A stretch of DNA of 64,000 nt, from positions 37,386,001-37,450,000 of the forward strand of contig NC_043004.1 in the NCBI RefSeq assembly GCF_006345805.1. The letters run 5' to 3'. The translations under genes and the position numbers were made by a program. Shown here piece after piece: positions 13,801-62,439 of the stretch. The notes under the pieces were generated by a model that made no database searches, was not told where the DNA came from, and saw only the letters and a list, made by a program, of their open reading frames with translations. Origin of the DNA: Octopus sinensis (Eukaryota). The first letter of the stretch is position 1. Each line of letters starts with the position of its first letter.

Positions 13801-14182
13801 TTTCATCTTAGACAGCAGTATGCTTTAGGGAGGAATTTTGTGACTCGAAATATTTACATAAGAACAATAGAGAAGAGCCTGAAGTAGAGTAGAATAGTAA
13901 ATTATAACAGAATAGATAGATGAATCTACAATTTCTCCCTAGCCATACAGCCTATTCTGCATGGCCAAACCACCTGATCAATCTGAACTAAATTTGGCAT
14001 GAAGGTTTTTCATTACTTGGGGGAGGGGAGTCACTAAATTTTAAACTTTTTTTTTCAAAAACAGAAATGTGTTTTATATACCTGTTGTATATGTTGGTTT
14101 TGTTTTTTCCACTTTAAAGGTAAATGATTCTGATAGAAGTAAACACAATATTGAATAATTCTCTAATATATGTCAACGACCC

Positions 14183-14213
<31 letters not shown>

Positions 14214-17200: not shown

Positions 17201-20200
17201 CAGTTATAGCTTTTCATTCATTTATTTGTTCTCATTAGTGGATGGTACCATGTTTTGTTAATTACAACTATTGCAGTTAATTTATTATTTGATTTTTTTT
17301 TTTATTTTCTTTTGCAACTGTTAGAAATGAAATATTTCTAAAATTTCATTTGTAGGCCTCTATCTCAGTCAAATCTATAATAGACATAAAGGCACCGCAC
17401 TAATTTGATTTCCAATTATTTTACAAAAATAAATTTGGTTCAAAATATTTCCCCTTTCTGATAATGTTTGTTTCTGCTTTGTATAATTCAGATCTTAGGA
17501 ATATCTTGAAAACAGGTAAGGATTAGTGACAGGAAGAGCATCTAGTTATAGAACAATACCTCAGCAATACGTAGCATGGAAAAACAAATGTAAAAGATTA
17601 TGGCAAGCTGGCAAAACCATTAGCACAACAGGTTCAAATTCTTAGCCGCGTTTTGTCCATCTTTAGATTCTGAGTTTTAAAATTCTGCCAAGGTCAATTG
17701 CCATTTATCTTTTTGGAATTAACAGAATAAGTACCAGTTGAGTATTGGGGGTCAGTGTAATGGACTGGCCTACTTCCCTCAAAATGTTAGGCCTTCTGCC
17801 TAGAATAGAAATTGCAGATGTTTAATGAGCAGCTAATTCACAAAAGGTTTTTTTATATATGAATTGCAGAACTGAGAGTCGTATCAGAGTACCATAAGTA
17901 GTTTTAGTTGTATAATAATAATCCTTTCTACTATAAGCACAAGGCCAGAAATTTTTTGTGGGGAGGGGCCAGCCAATTACATGAGCCCCAATACTTGTAC
18001 TTATTTCAACCCCAGAAGGATGAAAGGCAAAATCTGAGCTCAGGACATGAAGATGGATGAAATGATGGTAAGCATTTTGTCTGGCATGCTAATGATTCTG
18101 CCATCCTTGCTGCCTAAATAATAATGGTAATGATTTCAAATTCTGGCACAAGGCCTGCAATTGGGGGCAAGGGTCAAGTCGATTACATCAACCCCAGTAA
18201 TCAACTGTTATTTATTTTATTGACCCCCAAAAGGCTGAAAGGCAAAGTTGATTTCAGTGCATAAGAACGGACAGAACACCACTAAGCATTTTGCTCGGTG
18301 GTGCTAACGATTCTGCCAGCTCTCTGCCTTGATGATGATGATGACAAAAGTGCAATTGGTGCTTTTGTGTGTGTTTTATTTTAAATACCATTAATTCATA
18401 TTGATCACACCATTGTTCTTTGAACATGTATTTTTTCTATTAAAACTTCTTGCTAGCATGGGTTGGTTGGTTTAACCAGGACTGGTAAACCTGGAAGGCT
18501 GCACCGGACTCCAGTCTGATTTGGCATGGTTTTCTGCAACTGGATACCTTTCCTAACACTCACCACTCTGAGAGTGTAATGGGAGCCAATTTGCATGACA
18601 CCAGTTTCTGCCACAACTGCGATTTTACTCGGCTTGATGGGTCTTCTCTAGCACGACATAATGCCAAAGGTCTCAGTCAATTGCCTCCATGAGGCCTAAT
18701 ACTCAAAAGGAGCTCAGCCACTTTGCCTCCGTGGGGCCCAGCGCTCGAAAGGAACTCGGCCACTTTGCCTCCGTGAGGCCCAGCGCTTGAAAGGAACTCG
18801 GCCACTTTGCCTCCATGAGGCCCAGCGCTTGAATTGTGTTCTTTACATGTCACCGGCATGGATGCCAGTTACATGACAACGATTTCACTTGGTTTGATGA
18901 GTCTTCTCAAGCACAGCATATCGCCAAAGATCTTGGTCGCTAGTCATTGCCTTTGTGAGGCTGAAAGTTCAAAGATCATGCTTTACCACTTTGTCCCATG
19001 TTTTTCTGGGTCTACCACTTCATTTCAACTTAGGATTCACTAAACTTATTTTGAGAAACAAAAAAAAAACAATTCCAGCTTCTCTTTTCTTTTTACATTT
19101 TTTTAATTTTTATTTCATTTTCAAGGAAGTTTTACCTCAGTGTCAAGAGAACTTCAAGGCTGCTACTTACAAAGATGTAAAAGTAACTATCAGTACAGAT
19201 AGTTTTCTATCCAGTTCAGTGTAAGTATTTGAATATAATTCAGATTTTATGCTTTTGCATCAAAATCTATTGTCATGGGTTTGAAAGCTTTACATTGCTG
19301 CATCATTCCATTCATCAAGCATTCTGATACGACCCACATACATTTTCATAAATCTTACTTGAAACTTATAGAAATTAAACCATTACCAGCTGAGGATTAT
19401 TTTTCATCCAGCATGTATTAAAGCATTCATATTCCATGTCCAAAACTACATATTCATTCTTTCTCCATATATTGCCTTCAGTCTCCATTCTTTTAATATA
19501 ATGTCATCAGAAATATTTTGTTTTTGGATTTGGTTTGCAAGATTCTTTATATGAGTTCGTGTGTTGAAGCATATTCTGTTGTGTCTGGGGAGAGTCAAAA
19601 CTATTGAAAAGGTTGCAAGACGCAACGAAAATTTTAGGAAAATAAAAATAAGAAAAAAAGTGGAAATTTTACCTGTGTGTGTGTGTGTGTGTTATATTAT
19701 AAGGCACAAAAAGAAAATGACTCTCCCCAGACACAACAGTCGTTAGAAATGTTGTCCTCTCTCGTGTTTTGCTTCATTTTTTTTTTTCTGGAAGTTAGGT
19801 ACATCATTCTGCCCAGTTTAGCATCAGCTCTAGACTCTTATGGTAAGCACTTGGTTCTGGTAGGGGATCCCTGTAACCTCTTGATGCACCATCATCTTCA
19901 ACACTTGACCAAGATGCCAAAATCCAGAACTAAATCCACTGGCCTCTCTCTTTCTTCCATCCCTCCTTTCTCTAACATTCACAGACTTCACTGCAACCCT
20001 GAGCTCACTCACCTCTTATTAATTTGTAAATCTCACATCCTACTCTTCTCCAACCTCCTACATTAATTATGTTGGTCTGATCTTAACTAATTAATTTATA
20101 ATTGTACCACATATAATTAGTATTCTTTTTTTTTTCTTTAGATCTGGTGGAGTGGAAGTCTTTGCCCAACAAGGAAAAATCAAAGTTGTCAATACTTTGG

Positions 20201-25432: not shown

Positions 25433-25570
25433 CTAGATAATAGGCCTGCTTGCATAATAAGTGTAGGTCAAATTATAATTCTTGAACATACAAAATTGAT
25501 GATCAAGTCGCATATAGCCAGGAAGTGGTTCATCTTGCAAATCTTTATAGGCGTTTCGAGCATTTGAAGC
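25433..25570 (-). CDS. AMD1: AMD1 terminal exon (stop TAG)
   Basis: ttcctttag|GCTTCA...ATCTAG; ASNARNAYKDLQDEPLPGYMRLDHQFCMFKNYNLTYTYYASRPII*. Confidence 0.92.
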   Translation of the reverse strand, partial: ASNARNAYKDLQDEPLPGYMRLDHQFCMFKNYNLTYTYYASRPII

Positions 25571-28500
25571 CTAAAGGAAGAAAAAATAAAACAAATGTAG
25601 TTTTAAGAAATAAATTCTCTTAAATACTTTCATAATTTATAAATGTGTCAGCTCTCAAATTTAAATAGGAGATTAAGGCATGTACAACTCTGTATGGCAC
25701 ATGAAAACCTTCCATTAAAATTTCATGTTAACTTGCATTTCAAATACCAGCTAAATAATGACAAACTTATGTTATTAAATTCTTCATTATCTTCAAAATT
25801 AACTGGGAAAACTATTTTGACAAAAATATGGAAACAAAAGGATTAATATATTTACAAATAAACATAAATGCTTTGCAAGACTTCAATTCTATCGGAATTT
25901 TTAGAAAAATAGGTAGCAATAAATACAGAATAAATGCCGTTTCCAAGACTGGAAAAATAATGCTTTCTTTTATACAATATGAATTTTTAAAAGAAAAACA
26001 TGTTGAAATTAACAAATTAAAACAAAAAATGTGTTTGAACATTATTTCCTTTCAAAACTTTCAAATTCTTGATACAGATTAATGGGTGTTTTAAGAACAG
26101 CTTGTTTTGATGTCTAAATTGTTTTGTGTGATGCTGAAAATAGTGGGCATGCTTAAATTTTGAACTGGCATTTTGGTAAAAGCACCATCCGTTTGTGGCC
26201 GTTTGCCAGCTCTGTCTGGCACCTGTGCAGGTGGCACGTAAAAACACCCACTACACTCATGGAGTGGTTGGCGTTAGGAAGGGCATCCAGCCGTAGAAAC
26301 ACTGCCAGATCTGACTGGGCCTGATGAAGCCTTCCAGCTTCACAGACCCCAGTTGAACCGTCCAACCCATGCTAGCATGGAAAGCGGACGCTAAATGATG
26401 ATGATGATACCTTGCAAATTATGTTTTTTCAAACAATTTAAAGGCTACGGGAAGTTGTGAATGATTATATTTGTAGGCTGTGTTTTACAACTGTAAAGGC
26501 AGCTTCATAGAGGAAAACTCGAATTGCAATGAGAAGAGCAGAGCTGAAGACAAAGAAAACAAATGCAGCTCAACTGAGTAAAGTTTTCTTGAACTCTAAC
26601 TCTTTGGGTCTTTTTCAAGTTAACAAGTTAGAATGTTTTTGATAAATGGAAGAATGAGAATATAGAGATGAAGCCAATAATATTCAAAAGAGATAGAAGA
26701 ACTGTAATTCACAATGGCTGTAAAGAAAGCTTTTTATCTACACAGTCATACCCACATCTGGGTTTGAATGGAGCAAGCTCAGAGAAGTAGGGAACATTGC
26801 TGTGGCAATAGGAAAGTTACAGTCCATCAGTAACTAATTGTATGTAGTATGTCAGTAATCACTGATCTTTTAATTAGCAGGTGCAAGACTTTCACGAATG
26901 TGATTCAGAATGTTTGGCAGTTGCAACTAAGTCAAAGTATTTTCTGGCACCTGAGAGGAAACCCATCCTTTGCTACATTATAAATCAATGGTTACCATAT
27001 AAGGTCATCAGAGATAGTAAATGCCTAGCAGTGTGAATAGTGAGAAGTCTTCAGTTGTGCTGTATGTGTGCTTTTTTTGACATTTGTGGTGTCTGGTTGT
27101 GGAACAAGACTAGCAAGATCCCTGTAATAGAACATTTTTGAGATCTTAAGTGTGTGTGTTTGGTAGAAGTGTTCACGTGGTGTGTGGGTGATGACTGTGC
27201 AAAAGGTTAAGAAAATGAAGAGTGATGTCTGCAAATGAACAGACTATAAAAGGAAGCACGTGAGAATTCTCTAAAAGTTTGAGTCTGATTATCTTCGTGT
27301 ATGCTCCCTCATGTGGGAGCAGTACTCTATAGAGTACTTATGTGTGCTTTGATTTGTTCAGGTCCTTCATCTTGAAGATGACCACGATTCCACCTCTTGT
27401 ACACCACAGTAACATGAAATGGTACAGCTAGCTGCTTCCATCTGTACGAAACGTGTGTGATGAAACTACAAAAGTAGCAGTATTTCACTGGTGCAAGCCT
27501 GTATGGTACGTCTCCTACTGCAATAGGAACACCGTCATCTGTCTGTGTTTTAAAGAAGTTTCGGTCTTGACTTGCACTGAACTTAGTTAATAGTAAGAGA
27601 GGCCTGCACTTGATGACCAGTCTCGTTCACTCATCCATGACTTCCTGGACCACTGGCAAGATGGCCAAGACCAGCTTGTGCAGTACTGCATATGAGGACC
27701 ATTGTGTCACCAGGCTCTGGAATACATGCCCCACTGTGGTGTTATTGGATATCACTTTCCTGCTCGTTAAAATTTGATCAATGATTGCTGGGATTCCTCG
27801 TGTGTGCTACAAATAACATATAACTCAATACAACCATCTAAATTGTTGGGTTGTTGGTGACCAAACCAGCAACTTTATCAATTCTGTTTGATAAGGAGGA
27901 GAATGAAAAAACAAAACCTGTTAAATGGTGGGTGAACTCAGGAGAGTCAAAGGTCATCTGTTATTGTATGTATATATATCCTTGCTTATGATGCATGCAA
28001 AGATTAGATTTGTGATTTGTAGAGGCTCAACAACTATCTAAGGCTGCTAAAAGAAAGCTAGCCATTGTGATACTGTATTATGCTTATGTGGTTGCCATGA
28101 GATGTTATTGAAGATGAGTGAGTATAAATTGTATGCTGCTAAATCAAGCAGATAGGAAAGAACAGAATAGAAAAAAAATAGGAAGAAAAGTTGTAGGTAT
28201 TGAGAATAACTACTTCAGAGAAAACAGATACGAAACAGAGTCTTTACTCGTGGGAAAGTTGTTTTATAATTATTGCTGATTCAAAACATGATGGAGGTAA
28301 TAGAAATGATGGCTAAACTTCGAAGTATTAAGGAAATTTTCATCAACAATAGAAAGTCCTAGCTGATTCCAAAGAAGAGAGATTATTGAGTAAGAAAGTG
28401 GATTCTATCTAAGAATATATTCTGGAAACTGTCTGGATAATAGCATTAAGGACGTGAAATGTAATAAAAACAAAATCCTTACTTTATTTGCAAAAACCGT

Positions 28501-31500
28501 TAGTAAAAAGTTTCCAGGCTTGAATAGGTCAAGAAGCTTGTTTAGCAGCTCAAAATAAGATTCCTGTAAATAGAAAGACTGAACTAGAAATGCAATATCA
28601 CAAAATGTCTCAATACAGGTAATATAGAAAATATTCTGTCTCCATATGCACACCTGCTTAACATGGAACAAATTAAAATGATTTGATAAATGCGTAGAGA
28701 AACCATTTTTATTCTGGTATATTGAATCCATTAAACTGATAGAGGTTCGATGCATTAATCTGTAATGGTTGGTCGTCTTACCTGTTATGTGAGTTTTGAA
28801 CATTGGCTGAGCCCAGTGCCTTGGTTGAGTATTTTATTGGATTTGGATTGAAGATCCAATCACTTTGCACTTAATACATTCTCAAACAACTAATCCATAG
28901 ACACTCTGGAACTTGCCCATTTTCTATAAATTGGTGTAACAAATCATCTATGAGCAGAGGGGTGAGCAATTTTCATGAAGGGCAAGTCATGTTATTTTCT
29001 TACCAGAGTAAAATTAATATAACAGAGCACATGTAACCATCACCAACCCGAGCTAAAGTTTCCAAACAATGGATGAACTATACAAACACCAGAATTCACG
29101 ATGCTTTATTAAGTCCACTGGACTATTTAACAAAGGAATAAAGTCTCACTGTTATTTTCCAAGTTTGTTTCTTGTATTATTATCACAAGTGAACACACAA
29201 CAGATATAACATAATGGTATGCAAGATTCTGTAGTAAACCAAGGGAGACTTTAGACCACTGCATTAAAAATGTTTGGTGTGAGTTTTAGGGATGCAGTTG
29301 AAATAAGAACATGAAAAGATGAAGGAAATTGTTTAGAATAAGATCTGGAAAGATCCTAAAGTGAGATACAGCAGAAGTGATGAAAACAGTAGGTGGAGTG
29401 TCTTCTGATTGAGGAAGCATCAAAGAAAAATATGTTAAAACAAAGAAGACAGTGACAATGATGATCAAGCAGAGAAAAAGAAGTTTTTTATTTGATAATA
29501 ATGAGCACTCCAATGTGGTCTAGTGGTTAGGATTCCTGGCTTTCACCCAGGCGGCCCGGGTTTGATTCCCGGCATGGGAACGCATTCTTTTTAGCCTTCT
29601 GGCTTCACAGACCCCAGTTGAACCGTCCAACCCATGCTAGAATGGAAAACGGACACTAAACGATGATGATGATGATGATGATGATGATGAAGCAGAAGTG
29701 AAACGCTTGTCGACATTGAGCAAAATTGTTAGAAATTATTTGCGAGTGTTGAGCTTATTTATCAAGTGGAACACTTGGATGCAATATTTAAAATATATGG
29801 ACAAAGGGGCTAGAAGTTGTCAAAGACTAGATCTTGATCCTGAAGAGCTTAGTTTTAAGAATTTAATGAGGAAGATAAATGGGAATGGGTTAGAGAAAAG
29901 TGGCAACAGAAAGTGAAAGAATTACCTCCCAAAGAGATTTGACAGATCATAACAGTTCAAACAGAGCAGAACACGGTTTTTATAGCTGGAAGTTCTTAAT
30001 ACTAAGTTCTTTACAAAGGAATATATTAGGTGCATTTCAGTGTGACACCAGCACTGAATGTTGTGTTGTGGGCAAGACTAGAACAATCTCTCTGTTCCAC
30101 ATTGTCTCCATTCATTTTCTAATCCCTTCACAGAATGTAGTGGATATATTTTATCAGGGTGCCATCTTTAGTTTCTAAGTTGTCTCTACTCAGTCAATAT
30201 AAATGAAACAGGGAGAGTAAATAGAATAAAAAGAGTATTAATGTGAAAGAAAGCAATAAGAGTGGTAGGAGAAAGAGTAATGGAAGAGTGACAGAGTAGG
30301 TATATTATCATAATATTGTGATACCAGTGCCGGTGGTTGTGATACCAGTGCTGGCGGTACGTAAGAGAACCATCCGAACGTGGCCGTTGCCAGCACCGCC
30401 CCGACTGGCCTTGTGCCAGTGGCACGTAAAAAGCACCATCCGATCGTGGCCGTTTGCCAGCCTTGTCTGGCACGTAAAAGGCACCCACTACACTCACGGA
30501 GTGGTTGGCGTTAGGAAGGGCATCCAGCCGTAGAAACATTGCCAGATCAGACTGGGCCTGGTGCAGCCTTCTGGCTTCCCAGACCCCAGTTGAACCGTCC
30601 AACCCATGCTAGCATGGAAAGCGGACGCTAAACAATGATGATGATGATGATTGATGCCATATAATGGTATAGTGTGATATATGCATAAACCGTTAGCAGT
30701 GAAACTGAAAGTGAGAAAGTAGAGCAGAGAATACATCATTCATGACAATTTTGATCATATAAAAAGAAGGGATAAATAATATATACTAATGTCATGCAAG
30801 AAAGAGAAAGAAAATATAAGACATAACATTTTCTTACTTGGGAAACATTAGTTTCGAAACTGACATAAGAGCACTGAGGTTCTGGTGTGACATGAATGGT
30901 AATATAATAACCCTGTAAGTAGAACATGAAAGAGGATAACGTTTATAATCAACATGGGAAAAGCAATTGATTAACAAAATGGAGAGAGGGGGAGGGGGTG
31001 AAATTTTCAGAATTAGGGCTGGTCGAGGAAACAGTGGTTCATTTGGATAAGATAGCAGGAAACAAAACATGAAATGGGATTTTCGAGATTTAGAGCAAGA
31101 TTAAACAGAATTGAATAATTGGATTTCTTAACTTTAACTATAGCACACCCCACTAAATAGACAGGTAAATGAATGACAATAGCAATTATAAAGAGTGCTA
31201 TAGAGTGAAACAGAATCAAACATTTGTATTCTTAACTTTAACTATAACATACAGTATGGAGTAATCAAAAGTTTGTGACAAAAATAGATAAATAAATAAC
31301 AATAGTAATAATTATAATGTGCGATAAAGTGAGAGAGAATTGAACTGAACATAGGGTTAATGTTAAGTTTACTATAACATACGGCATGGAATAAAAGATA
31401 CAGTGAGGGTACATAGATAAATTAACGAATAATAATAGTAATTATAACTTGTGCTGTAAAACAAGGTTTAGATGTGTGCTATGCTGGAAACAAGAGTTGC

Positions 31501-33984
31501 TTATCTGAATATTTTCTCCTTTTCTGACTTCCACTGCATGAGGCAAGATTGTACACAAGAGGTAGGGAATCTGAAGGGAGTTAATTTACACAGGGTGGGA
31601 GAAACGGAAATAATATCCTCGTGTTGGTCAAAGAACAGTGAACAGCAAAGCACTGTGGCTGCCCTATTCCCAAGCAAAAGCCAATGTGGCATAGCCTCAA
31701 ACGAAGCAAGCTACTAAGGAAATGAAATGCATCTCTTAAAAATTAATTTGATCTCAAAAGTTGAATAATATACCACACATGCACACTCCTCAGTCTTTAA
31801 ATGACAATGAATGGATGCGGCAGAAAGAGCTGACTGTTTATGACCCTATCTGCATACAGGAGCTACACTCATAAGTTGAATAGCACCACATCCATTAAAG
31901 GTGAAAATCATGAGAAAATTAGTTATTTATTGAAGTCTATTCATTAAATTAGTTTTTATAATGAGTTGGAAATCATTTACTTTTTATAATCAATAATTAA
32001 TTTATAAAGCTTTAGTCTTTGCTCCTAGGCAGCATTTTCCTTAGAATTGGATAAATAATGATTAATAAGTGTGAAGTTATAAAAATATTCTAATCTTGGA
32101 GTAGAAGTGTTCCTAATAAAAAAAAATTATTTTATGACAGACACATTAAAAAGTTAAAGCAGAATAAAATATTTGGAGAACAAAAAAAAAAAAAAACCCA
32201 TCTGGTAGCTTTGTAAACCTTCAAATCTAAAATTATTGGCTGCCTTATAAGAAATGTGGTTGCTATGGTTACATTAAGGTAGACCATTTGGTATTTTGGT
32301 TCTTTGGGAAAATAAATGATCAGCACATGATAAAAGGGACTTGTATTACCTTTATAAAAGCAGAATAATCCTAGAATACCTCTCTTACTTGGCTTTGAAT
32401 GCCATTAGTGAAGTCTGGTTTGTTGGAGAGCACCATAGCAAATCATAGTTTGGTAATAACATACAGGGTAGTTCTAATTAGATCATCCCTTAGCTAGTAT
32501 AACATCAATGTCACCAGTTCTTTTAGGAACCTCAAATTGGATATTAGTAACATCAATGTCACCAATGTGTAAGGAACTATATATGTAAGGGTACCAATCT
32601 TCTCCTCTGATGAATTAATTAAAAAAAGAAAAGCAAGAAAACTGACAGTCAGGGTTATGAAAGGACTTAAGATGGTTGCACTTTTGGTGCAAGTATGTGT
32701 GTGTGTGTATGTGTGTGGTAAGGACTTGACAAAAGGATCGATTTTTGTGGATGTTTATCATGTATATTCAATGTGGAATTACAAAGAGGACGGCGACCAA
32801 GCAACTCTGTGGATAAAAATATTGATTGTGGTTATTTTGATTTTAACATCTCTGTCACATACCAGAGAAGGAAAATGGAGTTATATGTGACAGTGAAGAC
32901 ATACAAAAGGCAAGGAAGAGAAAAGAGTTTCACATTTGTATATTGCATAGAATCTTGATATTTTTCAAGATATCAAGAAATAAAACTAAAATTTTAGGAA
33001 TAAAAAAAGTACAGATCATTTACCCCTGGCAGTATTCCATTCATGGAATATCCACATGGTTCAAATAAATAGTCATCAATCAGCATATTGGGTAATAGTT
33101 TATCAATACCACACTTCTGAAAAAGATGGAAAAAAAAATTATTATATCCTTTTTAATGATTTAAGAGGACTTTTGCAATGTGGAAACAGGAGCCATGATG
33201 CTGCAATAAGAAGCAGCATATGAAGATAACAAATTATTCTTAAACCAAAGAATAACTTGCAAAAAGGCAGATTGTTACCAGATGAAGGCAAGAGAAATAC
33301 TATCTGATGAGCTTTCACCCAGTTTCTGTCTACCTAATTTCACCCGAGGTCAAGGTGCCACACAGTGGGATTAAAACGGTAATCACCATGTCGTGAAGCA
33401 CACTTCTAAAGCACTGACCATGCTTAAAACTACTTTATTCTTTCACTGGTTTCAGCTATCAGATGGCAGCCATGCTATGAACCAACTTCGAATATTTGAT
33501 TGAATTATATCAAATCTGTTTTTCAGTCTAGTGTTTAGTTTAACCAATCTCTATTTTTGGAACTGCTTAATTACAGGACAAAAACAAGACACAAACAACA
33601 ATGTAAACATAAAAAAGAGACATGGAAACAGGCATGCACACACATATATGTATCCACAGACACACACAAATAAATATATCCATATATACATTATATATAT
33701 ATATACGTTTAAATATTTGTTGTGCAAGATTTTTTATGTGAAGTCGTGTGTTGAAACAGATATTGTTATATTTCGGAATGGTCATTTTGCTAGTTTAGTC
33801 AATAAATAAGAAAGAAGAAAACAAAGGACCACTGATGCGGTCACAGGAGTGTCACGAAAGAACTCTGGCTGAAATAAGATTAAGATTAATGTAAAAAATA
33901 AATAACACTGAAGCAAAATAACACCAAATATATAGTGCGTGTGTTTTTATTGGCTAAACTCGCAAAATGACCATTCCGAAATAT

Positions 33985-49000: not shown

Positions 49001-52000
49001 GGGACAAACAAGGACAGACATAGGTATTAAGTCGATTACATCGACCCCAGTGCGTAACTGATACTTAATTTATCGACCCCGAAAGGATGGAAGGCAAAGT
49101 CGACCTCGGCGGAATTTGAACCCACAACGTAACGGCAGACGAAATACCGCTATGCATTTCGCCCAGCGTGCTAACCTTTCTGCCAGCTTGCCGCCTTATA
49201 CTCGTCATCCAGTAATACCACTGCACCTCTTGTGTGTCCACAGCTTGAAACTGGCTACACCTTATTATGTTCACTAATCATTTTGGTTTATTTTTGAATT
49301 ACAAAAATTTCTGTAGATTCTCTTGTACTGATCTATTACCATATAATGATTTTAATAGCATTAATATTGCAGTAATTCTTGTAATATAATAAGACCATTA
49401 ATTAATCAGAAGGCAAAATTGATGCAATTTTTAAAATTGTCTGATTTCAGTACCCAAGGGGTTAAATTAGCATATGAAAATGTATGCTGTATTTTCAAAA
49501 CAAGAGCTGGTAGAGCAAAACTGTCATATTTGGAATCAACAGCACAAATACACCCCAAAATAGGCCTAACTTGCGAAAGTTTGATAGCATATGGCCAGTG
49601 TAATCAAGTTTCTTTCAACAAAGGGCTTTAACAAATATGTGAAAAATTATGAACAAACCTGACTGGCTTCAGAGCCATTAGAACTAGCTTCTTTGGTGAA
49701 GATTTTCATCTTTTCTTGATCCATATTCCACATAAGTAAGTAAAAATGTTAAGGAAAATTTGATAAGAAAAGTAATATTGGAATTTTTTCCTGAATAAAG
49801 AAATGATGACGTATTTTCTGAGAATTTTTTTTCTTTTCATAACAAATACTAACTTGGTGTAGAGAGCTGAATCACAGGCTCAACATCGTTAACAGGTGAA
49901 TGGGAAGGAAAATGTGATAGATGGAAAATGCTGAGATCTAATGATTGAATGTAGCCAGAGCAAAAGTAAACCAAAAAGCTTAATGAGAGGTATGATATAC
50001 CTGTAGAAAAATCAAACAAAAGACGAGAATGGGGGAAGTTCAAGTTTGTGTACTATGAGAACTGATTTCTGATATTTCAAGTACTTAGAGGTGGTTAGCA
50101 GCACAGCCAGGATGTATAGTCAATAGGTATCTGGATCAAGTAGAATTACAGTAATATTAAAAGATTTGGAATAAGAGAGGCTTGATCATTTTGAACAAAA
50201 ATATTGAATTGCTGAAGTTCAATATTTGGAGCTGAGTTTGCTCAGGATTGTTTAGCAGCAACATTTAGCATTGTTTGTGTTATAATGTAAATTGTATAAA
50301 GTATTGTGCTTATTAGAACAATGTCTTCAAAAAAGGTTTGTCAGTGAAGTTTGTAGTTTAGGTTAAGTTAGTAACATATACATTGTGGGTGAAGATGGTT
50401 GTATCTGTAGCTTAGAAGCATTTTCTATATCTTATATACAAAATTTTAATAATAGTTGTTTTTTTTTTTCACATTGCCAACCTATTTTAAATAATAATAA
50501 TATCACTGACCCTTTTTTTTTGCATTGAAATATCATCATCATTAAACATAAGTTATCCATGCTGGTATCGGCTGGACAGTGTGATCAGAGCTGGCAAGCT
50601 GCACCAGACTCCAGTCTGATGTAGTACAGTTTCTACAGCTGGATGCCCCTCCTAATACCAACCCCTTTACAGAGTGTGCAGAGTGCTTTTGCGTGGTACT
50701 GCATGGGCTCTTTTACATGATGCCACACAGATGTTTTTACATGTCGCCGTTTGGGCACTTTTATGTAGCATCATCACGAGTGCTTTACACCAGCAGCAGG
50801 ATTGGTCTTAACATGTCTGCCGCAGAGTACAGGTCTTCTTGATTATAGCAAGGCACCAGGTATCTCAGTCTTTTGTCATCTCACCTGAAAGGTTCATCTT
50901 CAGTACTTCATCTCCTGTCTTCCCAGTCTCCCACTTCCATGTGTTCCACCCACTTTGGGAGATCAGCACATTTTTATGGCGCTGTTGCCATCCATCCACA
51001 TCATGACCAAACTAGTGCAGTCTCCTCTCTTGCAACAAATTCCTCTTATGTCTAACTTCTCTCTCAGAGCACTGACAATCTGTCAAAACATGCACACTTA
51101 CATTATACATCCAGTGGAGCAGACTAGCCTTATTCCTTTCTAACCTTTGCATATTCTCTGCATTCAGAGCCCTTGTCTCAACTATCATGTAGAATTGTTG
51201 TCTGTATACATGCATCATACAATCTTTCTTTCACTCTGAGAAAGAAACCTTTTGTGGCCAACAGAGGTAACAGCTCTCTGCATTTCCTTCATCCTATTCT
51301 TAATCTAGCTATCACACTCTCCATGCATCCTCCCTTTGTACATGGCCTGCACAGCTTTCACCAGTCACTCGTCTATTCCTAGCCTCCTCAGCGCCCACCA
51401 CATCACACAGTGGGGCACTCTATCGAAGGCTGGTTTATTCTTAGCTAAATACTTCTCTTGCAGTTGCCGGACTATGAAGATAACGTCAGTAATACTTCTT
51501 CCCCAGACAAAGCCCAACTACATTTTGTCTAGCTCAATTCTGCTCCAAATTAATTGATGACTCTCTCCATAATTTCCATAATTTTCAGCATCTTGTCCAG
51601 GAAGTTAGATGCCACTATAGTTGCTTCTATCAAATGCATCACCCTTACCCTTGTCATACCTAACAATTACGCTGCTACTCCAGTCACTGGGTATTACACC
51701 TTCCTGAATAACCTGATTAACGATGCAGGTGACCAGCTCAGTCACTTTAATCAAACTCAATATTTCATTGTTACATAGTTTAACTCCCTGAACAATGACT
51801 GGTAAAATCAGTTCAGTAAGATTTGATCTCAGAATGCAACTAAATATCATAAAATATTCTGACATTCATCACTCAGAACAACAATAATGCAAATGAAAAT
51901 CTTCATGCTCTATTTCAAATATTTGCTCCAACCTTCCATTATGTTATCATCATTGAAGCCCAGCATCCCAAACCTAACCTCTCTTTTTCCTGTATATTTG

Positions 52001-53477
52001 GTTTTCCTTTATTGGCCACAAGATTTTTTTTTCACTCAATCAGTATTAAGTATTTCTAATAGCATGACTGTTTTCTACATACACACTGGCCACTGTCTTC
52101 AATGCTCAGTTCCTGTCTTAACATCATCGTTCAACATCTGCCAGTTGAACATCCAAATTGTCGTACGAATCTTTTTGCTTAACTTTTCACCATTTTTTGA
52201 CTTATTTGTTTCTATAAACTCTTCTCTCGGTGCTCCACTGATTATGACAACAAGGGTTCTACTTGATCTGATCAACGGAGCAGTCTGCTCATGAAATTAA
52301 CGTGCAAGGGGTTGAGTATTCCACATACGTGTGTACATTAAACGTAGTTCTCATGGAGATTCAACAGGACACAGGGTGTGACAAAGCTGGCCCCTTTGTA
52401 ATTACAGGTACTACTCATTTTGGCCAGCTGAGTGGAGTGGAACAACATAAAAGTAAAGTGTCTTGCTCAAGGACACAACACAGCCAGGAATTGAACTCAT
52501 GACCTTATGATCGTAAGCTGAATGCCCTAACCACTTAGCCACAGGCCTTCACACAAACTCTTCTCCTAACTCATTAGTTTCTATCATCCTTCTCTGGATT
52601 TAAAATCTGTTCTTCCATAGTTTCGCCAGTTCACTAACCAATTTGTCTTGGCCTTCATACAGTTTGGATTAGTTTCACTCTTGAATATTTAATTCCTGAC
52701 CAAAATTACTTTTCCCACTTCACCTCCATTAGTGGCTTCTTATTTTGTCAAGAAGCCACTTTGCTGGCCACTGCCATGTATATGGCACCCGTGAATCATA
52801 GTTATGGTTGTTGCTGGCGGCATGTAAAAGCACTCATTACACTCTTGGAGTGGTTGGCATTAGGAAGGACATCCAGCTGTAGAAACCATGCCAAACCAGA
52901 CTGGAACCTGGTGCAGTTCTCCAACTCATCAGCTCCAGCCCATGCCATCATGGAGAGCAGACGTTAACTGAGGATGAATTGCCCTGACCTCTTTACACCA
53001 GCCAGCAAGAGATCCTCTCATTGCTTGACTTACTAGAAATAAATCCCTCTTGAATCACCCTACCATAATAAAAAAGAAAGGACACCTTGGATGATAGATA
53101 CACAATGGCTGATAAAAAAAAAAATGTCATGAAAGATGGAATGCTCTTGATCATAAGTCTGTTTGAGCAGGGTTGACCAGGAGTTACACAACAACTATAT
53201 ATATATATAGGAGAAAGGGGTACGTTACACCGCAATAATATATGTATAAAAATTATATATAAAAATTACAAAAGGGGACAAGAAGGCAAACCACACAAAG
53301 AGACGACACAAAAAAACAGACGGGTCATTCGAAGCCTCTAATCTTCAGTCGGGAACCGGATCATCTTAGCAATTTCGGCTGATTAATCCTGATATCGCTC
53401 CGATCCGGCCAGTCCCAAGGAAAAACTAAGCTACGAGCATTAGATTTCTTGGAAAAAGGATCGAATAATTTTTATAC

Positions 53478-53508
<31 letters not shown>

Positions 53509-56500
53509 TATATATATATATGAAGCATATAAAATGCTGGGGTTCAGTCAGTACAGTAGAAAACTTATGACTGCAGAGTATGCCATATTAATTTATTTCC
53601 TATTTTTCTTTGAGTAAGACCATTCTTTCAGTGATAATGGGATTTTTGTCTCTCTTTTACAAATTAATTCATTCGTTTTTGTGATGTTGATACTTAGATC
53701 AAACCACCACTCCAATTCACAGTCAGGCTTTTCCTAACTGTATCATTAAGACAACACTAACCTCTCCTTACTGATTGAATTAAAACTAGAGGATTTATGG
53801 GGTTTTGTGTGTTCTGCTTTTTGTAAAAGACTACATAGATTTTTTATTAGCAATAATTTTAATTGTATGAGAGAATTTCTAATGTCTTCTGTATTTAGTT
53901 GTGATATATTTCAATATTTTGTGCTTAAAATAGCTATCTTATTTTAAGTCTGGTGGTATTTGCTGTGCTTATTTGCAAGAAAAAGATAATATCAACTGCT
54001 AAATGTTTCTTTTGTTTATATTTCATAAGCTAATAAAAAAAACTAGTGGTGTCCAATATGTTTTACTCGAATTGAACGTTATTATTCAACCAGGATGCAA
54101 ACTGTAGCATTTTATATTTAAATCACTTCTTTGAAGATGCTACAATGCCAAAAAGAAATATGAATATAAACAAGGTAGAAATCAATTAATTAACAGTTTA
54201 CCATTTCAACATGTGTGTCAATAAAAAAAAAACATTCAGTCAATTTGAAAAAGTAGATCTTTTTAGGGAATGTAATACCTACAGCTTTCAAATAATATTT
54301 TTGATGATATTTGTCAATATAGTTAAGGATATTTCAAATGTTTGATCAGGTTCTGAAATTTTTTCATCATCCAATGTATACAGATACCTAAACAAAAACA
54401 AAAATTAATTGAATGTAAATTCAGAGAAACATTAATAACAAAGAGAATCTATTGAGGATTTCCAGCAAACACTCCAAAGATAAAACAGGATAAAAAAAGA
54501 AAAAAAACTCTGGACTGCAATGCTACTTTTTTGAAGAATTAATCTGACTATTCATGAATTAATACAATTAACAACTGTGGTTGTAGCTTTTGGATCCAAT
54601 TCATCATACTGCAACAATACAGATCTCACCAGGAGAATCAAGGATTCCATCATTTTCAACTGCATCAGCAACCAAACAGCTTCATTCAATGAACTCAACC
54701 AAAGAGAACCTTAAGCAAATGCAATGACTGAAATTCTAAGGACCCACATCCACCTTAAATTTGATTTTAAAAAATTTTTGTTTGTTTGTTTAGTAGCAGA
54801 GGCAGAGAACTTCATTGAGGAAATCCCAACTATATCCAGCCAGAAGCATCTGGCTTCATCCACCAGTTCCTGCTCCTTATCCACCAGTTCCTACTCCTTA
54901 ATGTTATCACATTCTAGTTATCAACGGTTAGGATTTGCTCCCTTCTAGACCCTTTTTGAGGGCTCAAGATATGTAAACTTTGTGCATTGATTTCACACTT
55001 CCCAGGACAGGTTGCAGGCCCATCACCCATTTTCACAACATTGGATGGAGACTGCAATATACTTTATGGACTGACCCCTCCACCTAATGCTTGAACATGT
55101 CTCTTGTTACCCTGTTTAAAGGACAATCTTGTATGAACACTTTTATTGCCTCTATATTAAATGATGATGATGATGATATTGCAATTTTTAGCGGTCGTAT
55201 TTATGTCATTTACCAATTTGGTAATTTTCTCAAATCAACAAAAACAAGGCTTTTTATCTGAGGTGGCCTTTACTCACCATGTCATAACTACATCACTGGG
55301 TTGTGAGAGTTTTCTTGAGAGATAACAAAGTCACCCAATGCTCCATTTCCCCCAACAGATTACTGTTGATACAGGGTTGCTTATTTGTCCAGTAAGTGCC
55401 TGCTAATCTCATAATTAACCATTATATCTGGTGACCAGATCGCTATCCATCATCTGTGACCTGTCTCTAACAAAGCAGTTCTACAGAGAATTATTTTTAT
55501 AATGAAAGCAGAAATTTGAACAATAAACAAAGTAAAATTTGGATTGGAATAGACTGAAAATGAAGAATCAAGACAGAAATATCCTAACTTCAGAAGACAG
55601 AAGGAAAGTAGAACTTTGCAAACCAATGTCAGTAATAACAGAAGCAAAAAAAAAATTAATTATTTGGCTATAATTGCATTTGTAATGTACTTACCAACAA
55701 TCTTTATTTATTCTTCCTAGAGTGTAGGCAACACCATCTGAATGCAAAGACAAAAATATAAGAAACACTAGGAAAGACCTTAAGTAATGTAACAAAACAT
55801 TGTGTTCCTCCATTCCTAACAAATAGCAACAGTATGAAAATAACAAGAAACAGAACACGACCCTCATCCTCATCATTGTTTAATAACATCCATTTTCCAT
55901 TCTGACATGGGTTGGACGGTTTGACTGGGGACTGGCAAGACAGGAGGCTGCACCAGGTTCCAATCTGATCTGGCAAGGTTTCTACAGCGGGATGCCCTTC
56001 CTAACGCCAACCATTCCGAGAGTGTAGTGAGTGCTTTTTATGTGCCATTGGCATGGGAGCCAGTCAAGCAGCACTGGCATCAGCCACGTCCAGATGGTGC
56101 TTTTTATGTGCCACTGGCATGGGGAGCCAGTTAGGCAGCACTGGTAACAACCCACGCATATATGTATATGCCTATATAGATATTTGTTCATATTTTTTAT
56201 GTATATTAAATAATACGTGTATCATGTTTAATGTATTAATATTAATATTTTTAAAGTTCCTTATAACCTCTGACGAGGCCTATGGTTGTATATATAAGTA
56301 CCCTATTTTTAAATGCCTACAATCTCAGTATGTTCATACCCATAAGCAATAAAAATAAAATTAACTATTTTTAGCCATAGGCTGAAACAGCTGTAAGGAG
56401 TGATTTTAATGATTTCAACAATTTATTTTATATTATGACTTTTATAATTTGTTTTCTTATCTTATATGTATTGAATTATAAGATATATATGCATGCTATT

Positions 56501-56913: not shown

Positions 56914-59257
56914 ATGCATACTCAGGATGTTCAAATGCATACACAGAACCCCTAATACAACACACACACATATATATGCACCCTCACACACACGCACCAC
57001 CAGGACAATTATAACACAACCACTTAGAGACACACACACTAACGTACACACATAACATCTTCACCAACACAAAAAACACACAAACATACACATGCACACA
57101 CACGCGCACGCGCGCGAACAAATGCATACACACACACACAACACTCGGACAAATACTAAAGACACACATACACTTGAAAGGAACTTGGCCACTTTTGCCT
57201 CCGTGGGGCCCAACACTTGAAAGGAACTCAGCCACTTTGCCTCTGTGAAGCCCAATGCGCCAACAGTGCTCTCTAAGTGCTACCAACATCAGTGCCAGTT
57301 ACAAGACACCAAGATCAGCCATGACTAAGATTTCACTTGGCAGTTGTCTCTCTTGCACACCACATCTGATGCCTCTTATGCCTCTACTTTTCTCTTAAGA
57401 TGCTTACACACATTATACACACACTTATGTTCTTTGCATGTCTTCGATGACTGGCGTCCGTGCTAGCAGGATGCAAAGAGCACCATACAAGTGTGATCAT
57501 TGACAGAGCGGCTAACCGGCTTCAGTGCCAGTGGCACTTAAAAGGCACCATTCAAGCATGATCGTTACCAGTATCGCCTTACTGGCACTCGAGCCTCGTG
57601 CTAGTAGAGTATTAAGAGCACCATCCAAGCATGATCATTGCCAGAGCGGTTATCTGGCTTCCATGCCAGTGGCACATAAAAGACACCATTCGAGTGTGAT
57701 CGTTACCTGTGCCAGTGGCATGTGTAAAAGATTCGAGCGAGGTCGTTGCCAGTACCTGACTGGCCCCCGTGCCAGTGGCGCATAAAAAGCACCCACTACA
57801 CTCTGGGAGTGGTTGGCGTTAGGAAGGGCATCCACCTGTTGAAACTGCCAGATCAAGATTGAAGCCTGGTGCAGCCATCTGGTTCGCCAGCCCTCACTCA
57901 AATTGTCCAACCCATGCTAGCATGGAAAGCGGACGTTAACGATGATGATGATGATGTATTTATGGTGGATGCTGATGAGGTGTGTAGACAATACCATGTA
58001 TATGTAGGGGGCTTGTTTTTGGTCAACATGTTCTGTTGGGTTTCTGGTTAACACTGACCCTAGCATGTGTGCATGCAACTGCTTTTACACTTAGTGTAGA
58101 TTTGGGACCAATTTGCATGTATATGACTATGCTTTTTTGTTAAATTATCTAAAATATTACTTACTATTGAATAATTCATCCAAATGACTGACCTATAACA
58201 GAAAAAGAAACAATATATTAACCACATTGGTTTGTTTTTATATATTCATTGTAAGCAATAAACTTCAATGTTTCACAGATATAGAAACATATGCTGACAC
58301 ACACATATTTCAGCATTATCTTTCCTTTACTATCACACACCCATACATTCATACTTGCAATAAAGATAAAGAAGTTAAAATTTAAATCCTTCCCAACAAG
58401 ATAACTCATATGTAATTGCAACCATTCCTCATTACTCATATGATTATTATACCAATTGTTAATTATGAATAATTTTTTTATAATAACTATTATTGATAAT
58501 TAAGTTATATAACTTACTGTTATTGTTAATAATCATGTGGTTATATACACTCTTGGTAGTTACTGAAACAGTTTTAGAAGCTTACAATATCAACAATATT
58601 GCTTGGTTTCTTATTTCTCTTAATGTGAGAGAGAGAAAGAAAGAGAGAGAGAGAGAGATTTCACTGCTTGATGATTTTATATTTTCCTCTTTTCATCCAC
58701 CATTTGTTGGCTAGTATCAGCTTTATTAGTATTAGAATAGTTTACAACTTAATAATACGTTTATGAATTTGTGTTGCAAGACACAAACACAGAGAGATAC
58801 AGGAACTGTAACAAATTTTCGGGTCCTAGGACAGCAGCAGCAGCTCCACTGGCAACTATCATTGCTAGCCTCTCTAGCATGTATATATATATATATATAT
58901 ATATATAAGTATGCCAGGTCATATTTATGAATAAGTATATATGTGTATGTGGATATTTGTATAAGTGTGTGTGTGCGTTTTTGTATCTAAGGTATGAGTG
59001 TATATGTGAGATGTGTATATGTATATATCATCATCATCATCATCATCATTTAAGGTCCATGTTCCATGCTGGCATATGTTGGACAGTTTAACAAGGATCT
59101 AATGTGTCGAAGGATTACATTGTGCTCCAATGTCTGCTTTGGAAGGTTTCAACACCTGGATGTTATTCATGACACCAGCCACTTTATAGCAAGGACTGGA
59201 TGCTAGGTGTGTAATAATTAAATTATATATATATGGTCCTGGGTATGACTTTAAGCA

Positions 59258-62200: not shown

Positions 62201-62439
62201 TTCAGGTTTGATAAAATAAGTACCACTTATGTACTGGGGTCAATGTAATCGACTTATCTCCTCTTCCAAAATTTGAAATCAGTATTTATTTAGCTAAAAT
62301 CATTAGTTTTCCCAACAAATTTAATTTTTGCCATTCATTACAATTAAATGAAATAATCTTTTACCTCATCTTCAAAGCGTTGATGAATTTCATGTTGTTT
62401 TTCTGGCTGTCTAAATTTCTTTCGAGAATAAAATACATC
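25433..62439 (-). CDS. AMD1: S-adenosylmethionine decarboxylase proenzyme, spliced CDS, 5'-partial
   Basis: Nine exons (75,28,43,55,81,93,75,81,138 nt = 222 aa + stop) join in frame to DVFYSRKKFRQPEKQHEIHQRFEDEVSHLDELFNNGVAYTLGRINKDCWYLYTLDDEKISEPDQTFELLMWNMDQEKMKIF...[66 protein letters not shown]...*. FYSRK, PCGYSMN, TIHVTPE and SYVSFETN are AdoMetDC hallmark motifs. Confidence 0.97.
28483..28563 (-). CDS. AMD1: AMD1 exon (81 nt)
   Basis: tttacag|GAATCT...AATAAA|gtaagg; [27 protein letters not shown]. Confidence 0.95.
29509..29580 (+). tRNA. tRNA-Glu-TTC: tRNA-Glu (anticodon TTC), possibly pseudogene
   Basis: 72-nt cloverleaf: anticodon stem CCTGG/CCAGG with loop CTTTCAC; T stem CCGGG/CCCGG. 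One acceptor-stem mismatch (TCCAATG/CATGGGA) and T-loop TTTGATT instead of TTCGA. TTTTT terminator at 29588-29592. Confidence 0.9.
29593..29690 (+). mobile_element. 5'-truncated RTE 3' tail abutting the tRNA terminator
   Basis: AGCCTTCTGGCTTCACAGACCCCAGTTGAACCGTCCAACCCATGCTAG...(GAT)9, the same tail as the 13270-13577 and 30320-30650 copies. Confidence 0.85.
30320..30650 (+). mobile_element. RTE 3'-UTR copy
   Basis: Modules plus GGTTGGCGTTAGGAAGGGCATCCAGCC plus (GAT)n; 21-bp tandem duplication at the 5' end. Confidence 0.8.
30838..30912 (-). CDS. AMD1: AMD1 exon (75 nt)
   Basis: cttacag|GGTTAT...TCCCAA|gtaaga; [25 protein letters not shown]. Confidence 0.97.
33024..33116 (-). CDS. AMD1: AMD1 exon (93 nt)
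   Basis: tttttcag|AAGTGT...CCAGGG|gtaaat; [31 protein letters not shown]. Confidence 0.97.
34985..35308 (-). mobile_element. tRNA-derived SINE with a nested same-family copy
   Basis: Insert 35082-35239 flanked by AAGACAGA(C/T)GAAATAC at 35066-35081 and 35240-35255. Confidence 0.75.
35565..37170 (+). mobile_element. CR1/L2-type LINE ORF2 fragment (RT)
   Basis: AGLDGFPAILLK, KNYRLISLTSHISKVMERI, QHGFRPRRSCLTQLL, YLDFAKAFDKVDHG, GVPQG, YADDTKV; stops and frameshifts. Confidence 0.92.
37592..37831 (-). mobile_element. Pogo/Tigger transposase N-terminal HTH remnant
   Basis: RKKKHVFSSVNQKLQRIRELEASAAMTKLFEVYDVEKQTTLDICK resembles the pipsqueak/CENP-B HTH of pogo transposases. Confidence 0.65.
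39007..39470. mobile_element. Foldback MITE with long TIRs and 9-bp TSD (Mutator-like)
   Basis: ~165-bp imperfect inverted arms (A/G)GCATTCCTTTGAT...ATCAAAGGAATGCC; TSD CAATTCTG(T/C) at 38998-39006 and 39471-39479. Confidence 0.8.
39790..41620 (+). mobile_element. Highly degraded CR1-type LINE, interrupted by an RTE 3'-UTR copy (~40500-40820)
   Basis: EHGFGQSRSCFTQLLLHCDWVLQQLLDKSNVDVI parallels 36220-36340. Confidence 0.7.
44351..45200 (+). mobile_element. Internally deleted mariner element
   Basis: TA-flanked ~31-bp imperfect TIRs (...ATAGGCTGAC / GTCAGCCTAT...CCCTCA|TA); QDNAPAH and HPPYSLHLAPSHYHMF (decayed YSPDLAPSD). Confidence 0.88.
48965..49203 (-). mobile_element. Full-length tRNA-derived SINE inserted in an RTE fragment
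   Basis: Perfect 16-bp TSD GTCATCCAGTAATACC at 48949-48964 and 49204-49219; B box GTTCAAATTCC. Confidence 0.9.
49659..49739 (-). CDS. AMD1: AMD1 exon (81 nt), preceded by AC acceptor
   Basis: atttttac|TTACTTATG...AGTCAG|gtttgt; LLMWNMDQEKMKIFTKEASSNGSEASQ. Confidence 0.92.
49740..54332 (-). other. U12-type (minor spliceosome) AT-AC intron of AMD1, 4593 bp
   Basis: 5' end ATATCCTTAAC; 3' end TTCCTTAACATTTTTAC| (branch motif at + 49748-49756). No AG at the exon boundary. Removing it restores ...PDQTFE-LLMWNMD in frame. Confidence 0.93.
50830..52290 (-). mobile_element. Degraded RTE LINE inside the U12 intron
   Basis: IVNQVIQEGVIPSDWSSSVIVRYDKGKGDAFDRSNYSGI and an RTE C-terminal segment. Confidence 0.8.
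54333..54387 (-). CDS. AMD1: AMD1 exon (55 nt), followed by U12 donor
   Basis: tttgtttag|GTATCTG...TTTGAA|atatcctt; (W)YLYTLDDEKISEPDQTFE. Confidence 0.94.
55695..55737 (-). CDS. AMD1: AMD1 exon (43 nt)
   Basis: gcattcag|ATGGTG...TGTTG|gtaagt; (N)GVAYTLGRINKDC(W). Confidence 0.94.
56267..56398 (+). ncRNA. Minimal type I hammerhead ribozyme-like motif (Penelope-like element remnant)
   Basis: CTGACGA (56270-56276), 11-bp stem II with 85-nt loop, GAAA (56384-56387), C-AGCT-G stem III, GTA cleavage triplet, 3-bp stem I CCT/AGG. Confidence 0.6.
57460..57955 (+). mobile_element. RTE 3'-UTR copy with an expanded module array
   Basis: About six 45-73 bp GTGC(C/T)AG..AAAA.GCACC modules, then the common tail and (GAT)n; a similar array lies on - at ~62780-63220. 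Confidence 0.75.
58165..58192 (-). CDS. AMD1: AMD1 micro-exon (28 nt)
   Basis: tttctgttatag|GTCAGTCATTTGGATGAATTATTCAATA|gtaagt; VSHLDELFN(N); phases 0 to 1 bridge the flanking exons exactly. Confidence 0.9.
59340..59580 (-). mobile_element. CR1-type AP-endonuclease fragment
   Basis: IVIFTTYCPPD...HILLLADFNLPNID (YRPP...GDFNLP motif). Confidence 0.7.
60180..61010 (+). mobile_element. Rearranged RTE fragments (endonuclease part plus 3' part)
   Basis: VTAFVPHAGQ...AGDFNG-like segment; LHGSET...RLERNEAR-like segment. Confidence 0.7.
62089..62282 (+). mobile_element. tRNA-derived SINE with 15-bp TSD
   Basis: TATTTATTTAGCTAA at 62074-62088 and 62283-62297; same family as 48965-49203. Confidence 0.82.
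62365..62439 (-). CDS. AMD1: AMD1 exon (75 nt)
   Basis: Minus strand tttacag|GATGTA...GATGAG|gtaaaa; DVFYSRKKFRQPEKQHEIHQRFEDE. Confidence 0.95.

Follow-up and report, generated by a model that had tools for sequence, protein, structure and literature searches.

Does the AMD1 gene of Octopus sinensis, which encodes S-adenosylmethionine decarboxylase (AdoMetDC), contain an intron that depends on the minor, U12-type spliceosome, and if so, is this intron peculiar to the octopus and does it control polyamine synthesis? This question is raised by a 64,000-nucleotide (nt) stretch of the O. sinensis genome, positions 37386001 to 37450000 of contig C8 in an assembly (G000) of 2.72 Gb (gigabases) and 13,516 contigs; we refer to this whole stretch as the window and number its features from its first letter. 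AMD1 lies on the minus strand, and an earlier note, made from the letters of the window, had placed an AT-AC intron with U12 signals at 49740-54332. Our analysis indicates, with a probability of about 0.93, that this is a genuine U12-dependent AT-AC intron of O. sinensis AMD1, and that it is an ancestral, constitutive minor intron.

An AT-AC Intron with U12-Type Signals in Octopus AMD1

AT-AC termini, a ATATCCTT-type donor and a branch box near the 3′ end are the defining signals of U12-dependent AT-AC introns. We mapped the best database protein, XP_029639940.1 (S-adenosylmethionine decarboxylase proenzyme 1 isoform X1 from O. sinensis), onto the window by exact spliced alignment, and both this mapping and the DNA sequence itself bore out the boundaries, the donor, the branch box and the terminal AC proposed in the note. 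The intron (49740-54332, minus strand) is 4593 nt long and is inserted in phase 0 between E171 and L172; read on the minus strand, it begins with ATATCCTTAAC and terminates with TTCCTTAACATTTTTAC. It follows a 55-nt exon whose own acceptor reads tttag/GTATCTG (a slash denotes an exon-intron boundary) and whose final codons are CCT GAT CAA ACA TTT GAA. The donor junction of this exon is CCTGATCAAACATTTGAA/atatccttaactat; written as GAA/ATATCCTTAACT (54332-54321), it agrees with the pattern /[AG]TATCCTT, and the intron opens with a U12-type 5′ splice site of 8 nt, ATATCCTT (54325-54332), that matches the consensus in 8/8 positions. At the opposite end, the acceptor junction at 49740/49739 reads aaattttccttaacatttttac/TTACTTATGTGGAATATG, with AAATTTTCCTTAACATTTTTAC placed directly before the downstream exon (49739-49659) and its first codons TTA CTT ATG TGG. 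The U12 branch-point sequence, TTCCTTAAC (49748-49756; 9/9 match), has A residues that precede the intron's 3′ end by 11 and 10 nt, at the upstream distance from the 3′ splice site (about 10-15 nt) that is typical of a TCCTTAAC-like box. The 3′ splice site is the terminal AC (49740-49741) and lacks an AG; the AT...AC termini occur here together with both U12 boxes.

Translation across the boundaries leaves little choice of junctions. If translation runs on across the donor, it yields ISLTILTNIIKNII and is halted by a TGA after 14 codons, and reading back from 49739 one meets an in-frame TAA three codons upstream of the acceptor; since both boundaries are bracketed by stops, PDQTFE/LLMW would be lost with any GT-AG route within reach. 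We also counted the two U12 motifs on both strands of the window (128 kb, kilobases, in total). ATATCCTT occurs six times, compared to 3.4 expected occurrences, and TCCTTAAC followed after 6-12 nt by AC occurs four times, compared to 0.77 expected; two of these four matches are the AMD1 acceptor, and one is the AMD1 donor, which contains TCCTTAAC. Because both motifs are found exactly at the two boundaries demanded by the conserved reading frame, chance is excluded as their source. A second ATATCCTTAAC...AC string with donor-like and branch-box-like elements (8357-8379, plus strand) has no recognizable exon edge and is probably a chance occurrence. The interior of the AMD1 intron contains degraded open reading frame (ORF) fragments of a reverse transcriptase similar to that of long interspersed nuclear elements (LINEs), and these may be the source of its length of 4593 nt; neither tandem repeats nor Rfam matches were found in this interior.

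Conservation of the Intron across Animals

To compare AMD1 across animals, we mapped orthologous proteins exactly onto their annotated loci and let a script list every junction consistent with the protein, for ten species in all. In this comparison, the intron did not prove to be an octopus peculiarity. In seven non-vertebrate orthologues an intron is present at the identical phase-0 site after PDQT[FLI]E, with an ATATC donor and AT-AC termini (AT-AA in the horseshoe crab). These introns are 224 nt long in the chiton Liolophura (GAA/atatccttatga...gcccttgactgtcagcac/), 906 nt in the abalone Haliotis (atatcctttaag...taccttaaccacatccac/), 1565 nt in the mussel Mytilus (atatccttaaaa...ttccttaacctatgaac/), 336 nt in the annelid Owenia (atatcttttctg...ctccttgacctttgaac/), 223 nt in the nemertean Tubulanus (atatcctttgat...ccccttaacctgcaaac/), 1952 nt in the horseshoe crab Limulus (atatccttttat...tttcctaaactaagtcaa/) and 347 nt in the cnidarian Nematostella (GAG/atatccttacca...ctccttgacgttcacac/). 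The donor is ATATCC in Liolophura, Haliotis, Mytilus, Tubulanus and Nematostella, and ATATCT in Owenia; a TCCTTRAC-like motif lies 8-9 nt from the 3′ end in all six of these genera. The intron is thus carried by four classes of molluscs, the octopus included, in addition to the annelid, the nemertean, the horseshoe crab and the cnidarian. Of the remaining AMD1 introns that we mapped, over all ten species, every one is GT-AG (87/87), and a GT-AC alternative that the mapper offered for Haliotis proved to be an alignment ambiguity adjoining a normal GT-AG junction. The intron of Limulus polyphemus (locus 13937-15888) has non-canonical AT-AA termini, yet its donor, ATATCCTT, is normal and it has a TTTCCTAAAC box.

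The two jawed vertebrates that we mapped, the marsupial Antechinus and the shark Mustelus, do not have this intron. In both species the region is a single 145-nt exon that runs from a split W codon (phase 2) to ...VTR (phase 0), so that the mammalian exon of 145 nt, which the note had given for human AMD1, was recovered in a marsupial and was found in a shark as well. The vertebrate gene, with nine coding exons, encodes the same enzyme with the motif PDQTLE and has six of its eight intron positions and phases in common with the octopus gene (after R, between L and S, before xFFYSRK, between N and G, within the W codon split TG/G, and between Q and S). It differs from the octopus gene in that its one 145-nt exon takes the place of two octopus exons (55 and 81 nt), and in that it lacks two more introns that the octopus gene has after FEDE and ETNVSQ. 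Since position, phase and U12 signals are identical across phyla, the intron is best read as an ancestral eumetazoan intron, with the vertebrates as the lineage that changed. The note had called for an alignment of intron positions; ours (molluscs, annelid, nemertean, horseshoe crab, cnidarian and two gnathostomes) speaks for ancestral presence and for loss toward the jawed vertebrates. Judged from these alignments, the AMD1 U12 intron is older than the split between cnidarians and bilaterians, its class was kept in at least five phyla, and on the lineage to jawed vertebrates the intron was lost by exact deletion.

Metagenomic data provided a further sample. We scanned metagenome contigs for the pattern CCN GAY CAR ACN NTN GAR followed by RTATCC and obtained 64 loci, 43 of which are AMD1 exons (...YL[FY]T...PDQTLE) that represent 20 distinct sequences. 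Although the pattern permitted GTATCC, all 43 exons have an ATATCC donor. For the intron end, we required a TCCTTRAY-like box within the last 24 nt and did not require AC; in each of the 12 distinct sequences that have the next exon in the contig (12/12), the intron ends in AC before [LI]LM.

Minor Spliceosome Components and Use of the Junction

The O. sinensis assembly encodes all four small nuclear RNAs (snRNAs) that are specific to the minor spliceosome, each with a score above the Rfam gathering score. The best matches reach 126.6 bits for U12 (full-length), 94.5 bits for U11, 83.8 bits for U4atac and 96.9 bits for U6atac. Their recognition sequences (GAGUAAGGAAAAU, AAAAGGG and AAGGAGAGA) are intact; the aligned segments are AUGAGUAAGGAAAAUAAC in U12, AAAAGGG at the 5′ end of U11 and AAAGGAGAGA in U6atac. 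U6atac stands out by its number of matches, at least 43 over many chromosomes of the assembly, compared to two to five each for U11, U12 and U4atac; these numerous matches may be multiple genes or retro-pseudogenes.

By analogy with characterized U12 introns, the ATATCCTT donor and the TTCCTTAAC branch site would be recognized cooperatively by the U11/U12 di-snRNP (small nuclear ribonucleoprotein). From what is established for the minor spliceosome, the U4atac/U6atac.U5 particle would join next and catalysis would follow, by which the intron would be excised and PDQTFE joined to LLMW.

Several data sets bear on the use of this junction. Both NCBI models of the octopus protein, X1 and X2, include the junction 54333/49739, and the same 90% cluster contains the models of O. 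bimaculoides, O. vulgaris and Argonauta hians; for O. sinensis, O. vulgaris, O. bimaculoides and Argonauta, the AT-AC junction is already present in the NCBI models. A 321-residue homologue with 72% identity, presumably from another cephalopod, is encoded on a Logan contig of 1372 nt, in which PDQTFELLMW is unbroken and reads EPDQTFELLMWDM. Since a gene of tens of kilobases cannot fit into 1372 nt, this contig is presumably a transcript or complementary DNA. The PDQTFE-LLMW peptide is kept in every AMD1 that we examined.

Alternative Explanations and a Possible Regulatory Role

Two readings would deny the U12 dependence of the intron altogether. If it were an artefact of annotation or assembly, the two exons would not be joined in vivo or the locus would be a pseudogene, and the NCBI models are indeed predictions. 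However, the spliced gene yields a full open protein of 326 residues (XP_029639940.1) with a strong match to PF01536 (SAM_decarbox; 399.6 bits, profile positions 2-342 of 343), the exon structure recurs in independent assemblies of seven distant animals, and a contiguous homologous transcript contig exists; we therefore regard an artefact as the least credible of all explanations, with a negligible chance of being correct. Hardly more credible is an AT-AC intron that is spliced by the major, U2-dependent spliceosome. In U2-type AT-AC introns, the donor resembles GTRAGT with an A at position +1, and a TCCTTAAC box is absent. The octopus intron, in contrast, has the donor ATATCCTT and a perfect TTCCTTAAC 10-11 nt from a 3′ end without AG, and both the donor and the branch signals are conserved across phyla. 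These signals make the U2-type explanation very improbable, even though AT-AC termini alone are no proof of U12 dependence and U2-type AT-AC introns are known (PMC1557818).

A third reading accepts the U12 dependence and makes it a regulatory valve that has been selected for. Slow or limited U12 splicing, e.g., through the abundance of U6atac, would set the level of AMD1 mRNA and with it those of decarboxylated S-adenosylmethionine (dcSAM), spermidine and spermine, in the octopus and in other non-vertebrate animals, as a layer over translational control. Several observations are in keeping with this idea. The position of the U12 signals has not changed from a time earlier than the separation of cnidarians and bilaterians, whereas introns nearby were gained and lost; a retained intron would truncate the protein 14 residues after E171, at the premature stop, so that enzyme output necessarily depends on the efficiency of minor splicing; and slower splicing has been reported for a subset of U12 introns (PMC4066798). 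Mammalian rate-limiting minor introns, with slow and U6atac-limited splicing, offer a conceptual analogy, in that the octopus gene likewise has one U12 intron in a gene at a metabolic control point, whose retention gives a premature stop. However, conservation alone does not demonstrate gating. AT-AC introns meet with poor recognition from the major spliceosome and resist conversion (PMC7367187), and since that spliceosome does not easily take them over, their persistence is explained without selection; a pan-eukaryotic survey of minor introns likewise argues that much of their persistence is neutral (PMC10639083). Moreover, the intron is gone from jawed vertebrates, and no paper connecting U12 introns or minor splicing with polyamines or with AMD1, SamDC or AdoMetDC came up in our literature search; AMD1 is also unmentioned in a paper on U12 introns of insects. 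We consider it unlikely, then, that selection has maintained the intron over more than 600 million years to serve as a valve tying the production of dcSAM and polyamines to minor-spliceosome activity in non-vertebrates, and that jawed vertebrates dropped it once other layers of AMD1 control had taken over.

Most likely, the AMD1 intron behaves as a constitutive minor intron. Some points weigh against this assignment and against the history that we draw for it. We infer the dependence on the minor spliceosome from sequence signals, and the support for use of the junction is indirect, coming from the NCBI model, from protein conservation and from one homologous transcript contig. The metagenome pattern required RTATCC, so that AMD1 genes without a U12 donor were undetectable by it. 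Furthermore, the deuterostomes whose gene structure we mapped are two gnathostomes, with a transcript contig alone from Xenopus, and the arthropods are represented by the horseshoe crab.

As an ancestral, constitutive minor intron, the octopus intron resembles the U12-type AT-AC introns collected in U12DB, in IAOD/intronIC and in the survey of Larue and Roy 2023 (introns.info) in its donor ATATCCTT, its branch sequence TTCCTTAAC and its AC end. Like catalogued U12 introns, it is the only one of its kind among the GT-AG introns of its gene, it is deeply conserved, and it occurs in a genome that encodes the four minor snRNAs. Unlike most U12 introns, it lies in phase 0, which is the under-represented phase (PMC7367187; PMC10639083). 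O. sinensis was included in the published pan-eukaryotic classification of minor introns, which is available as a public database (PMC10639083), and the AMD1 intron is an ordinary, already annotated U12 intron. The rate-controlling enzyme of polyamine synthesis thereby joins the genes whose ancestral minor intron is found in most phyla of animals and not in jawed vertebrates; since the latter lack it, lists of minor introns that are based on vertebrates miss AMD1. The intron presents a clean case in which deep U12 conservation due to regulation can be set against the difficulty of converting AT-AC introns, and species open to experiment, Nematostella and bivalves among them, possess it too.

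Structure of the Octopus AMD1 Gene and Its Protein

A tblastn probe with mammalian AMD1 detected eight AMD1 exons on the minus strand, from 62.4 kb to 25.4 kb of the window, and the exact mapping of XP_029639940.1 added a mini-exon of 28 nt, so that nine exons and eight introns of the gene lie in the window; three further coding exons are located past the window end. In the direction of transcription, the exon DVFYSRKKFRQPEKQHEIHQRFEDE (62365-62439, with GT-AG flanks) is followed by the mini-exon VSHLDELFN(N) (58165-58192, known from protein mapping), by (N)GVAYTLGRINKDC(W) (55695-55737), by the 55-nt exon (W)YLYTLDDEKISEPDQTFE (54333-54387), whose last codon, in phase 0, is that of the Glu, and, across the AT-AC intron, by the 81-nt exon LLMWNMDQEKMKIFTKEASSNGSEASQ (49659-49739), after which a GT donor (gtttgt) stands. 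Further downstream are the exon KCGIDKLLPNMLIDDYLFEPCGYSMNGILPG (33024-33116), an exon of 25 residues (30838-30912), the exon ESYFELLNKLLDLFKPGNFLLTVFANK (28483-28563) and the last coding exon, ASNARN...YYASRPII with the stop codon (25433-25570). The seven AMD1 introns other than the AT-AC intron that lie wholly inside the window are GT-AG, as the note had stated of the introns traced in it.

When aligned with the mammalian sequence, octopus AMD1 possesses the YVLSESS self-processing site, the cysteine of KTCGTT, the motifs PCGYS and HxTPE, and the acidic motif of the putrescine site, PDQTxE. The roles of these residues are established for human AdoMetDC. In agreement with the note, E171, the Glu of PDQTFE and the last codon before the donor, aligns with Glu 178 of PDQTLE in a mammalian sequence that is 99% human. 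We take E178, together with D174 and E256, to belong to the putrescine-activation site of human AdoMetDC; our literature search found no source for Glu178 as a putrescine-site residue. For splicing, no mechanistic meaning is evident in the intron lying so near to E178; the position of an intron is not known to bear on what a residue does, and the phase-0 position is simply inherited.

Isoform X2 (297 residues), which is annotated in O. sinensis and in O. vulgaris, skips the 29-residue exon 2. This exon is located between positions 37452686 and 37474795 of contig C8 and ends just before the LSESS self-processing site. Short upstream ORFs, e.g., MKFIQQRSV followed by a stop, are seen about 100 nt 5′ of the AMD1 ATG in the genomic translation of positions 37470000-37479999 of the same contig.

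A Second AMD1 Gene on a Dicyemid-Like Contig

The only other AMD1 match in the octopus assembly lies on the minus strand of an unplaced contig, C8318 (about 195480-196466), which is 429 kb long and has a GC content of about 0.35. After removal of eight GT-AG introns of 25, 23, 26, 27, 24, 35, 23 and 26 nt, most of them at ancestral positions, it encodes a complete AdoMetDC of 329 residues (PF01536, 299 bits). We had considered this locus as a processed pseudogene that would prove the spliced junction and rejected this, as it is a divergent, intact gene with introns of 23-35 nt. Its neighbour is an RFC-like AAA+ gene with introns of 23-26 nt (at about 7400-8300 within C8318:196501-206500, minus strand), and a second unplaced contig, C6303 (959 kb), contains a gene for an ABC1 kinase with introns of 21-31 nt (within C6303:321001-331000).

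Among animals, introns shorter than 30 nt are found only in Dicyema and in myxobolid myxozoans (PMC13644364); dicyemids inhabit the kidneys of cephalopods, and D. japonicum has been collected from O. sinensis (PMC6736024). The ultra-short introns, taken together with the residence of dicyemids in this octopus species, make it most likely that C8318 and C6303 are DNA of a dicyemid parasite that was assembled with that of its octopus host. Because the AMD1 gene on C8318 then comes from another organism, it is uninformative on the octopus mRNA. That a chromosome-level octopus assembly contains what appear to be dicyemid contigs is of importance to all who use it.

At the exact phase-0 site of the U12 intron, between PEDTTLE and VLMVGL, the C8318 gene has a 24-nt element, GTAATCATTGTGTTTATGCCACAG (GTAATC...CAG). 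The gene, which is not part of the window, is similar to genes of Dicyema japonicum in its ultra-short introns, and its 24-nt intron is not U12-like; the sequence suggests that the U12 intron may here have been converted to the U2 type or replaced by a major-type intron. Since the 24 nt are in frame and free of stop codons, we read the splicing of this element from its position and termini only. A divergent U12 snRNA candidate on C6303 (331719-331846) exceeds the gathering score (56 bits) and has its AUGAGUAAGGAAAAUAAC branch-site-binding sequence and its Sm site intact, which hints that the presumed dicyemid may retain at least part of the minor spliceosome.

Other Features of the Window

Within the AMD1 intron between the exons that border it at 30838 and 28563, a tRNA-Glu gene with the anticodon TTC (UUC) is encoded on the opposite strand (29509-29581, plus strand; Rfam, 58.6 bits). 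The second gene of the window, on the plus strand, is that for subunit E of the V-type ATPase (PF01991), with exons at about 9400-9540, 12200-12290 and 20100-20200; the left 25 kb of the window contain debris of LINE reverse transcriptases around these exons.

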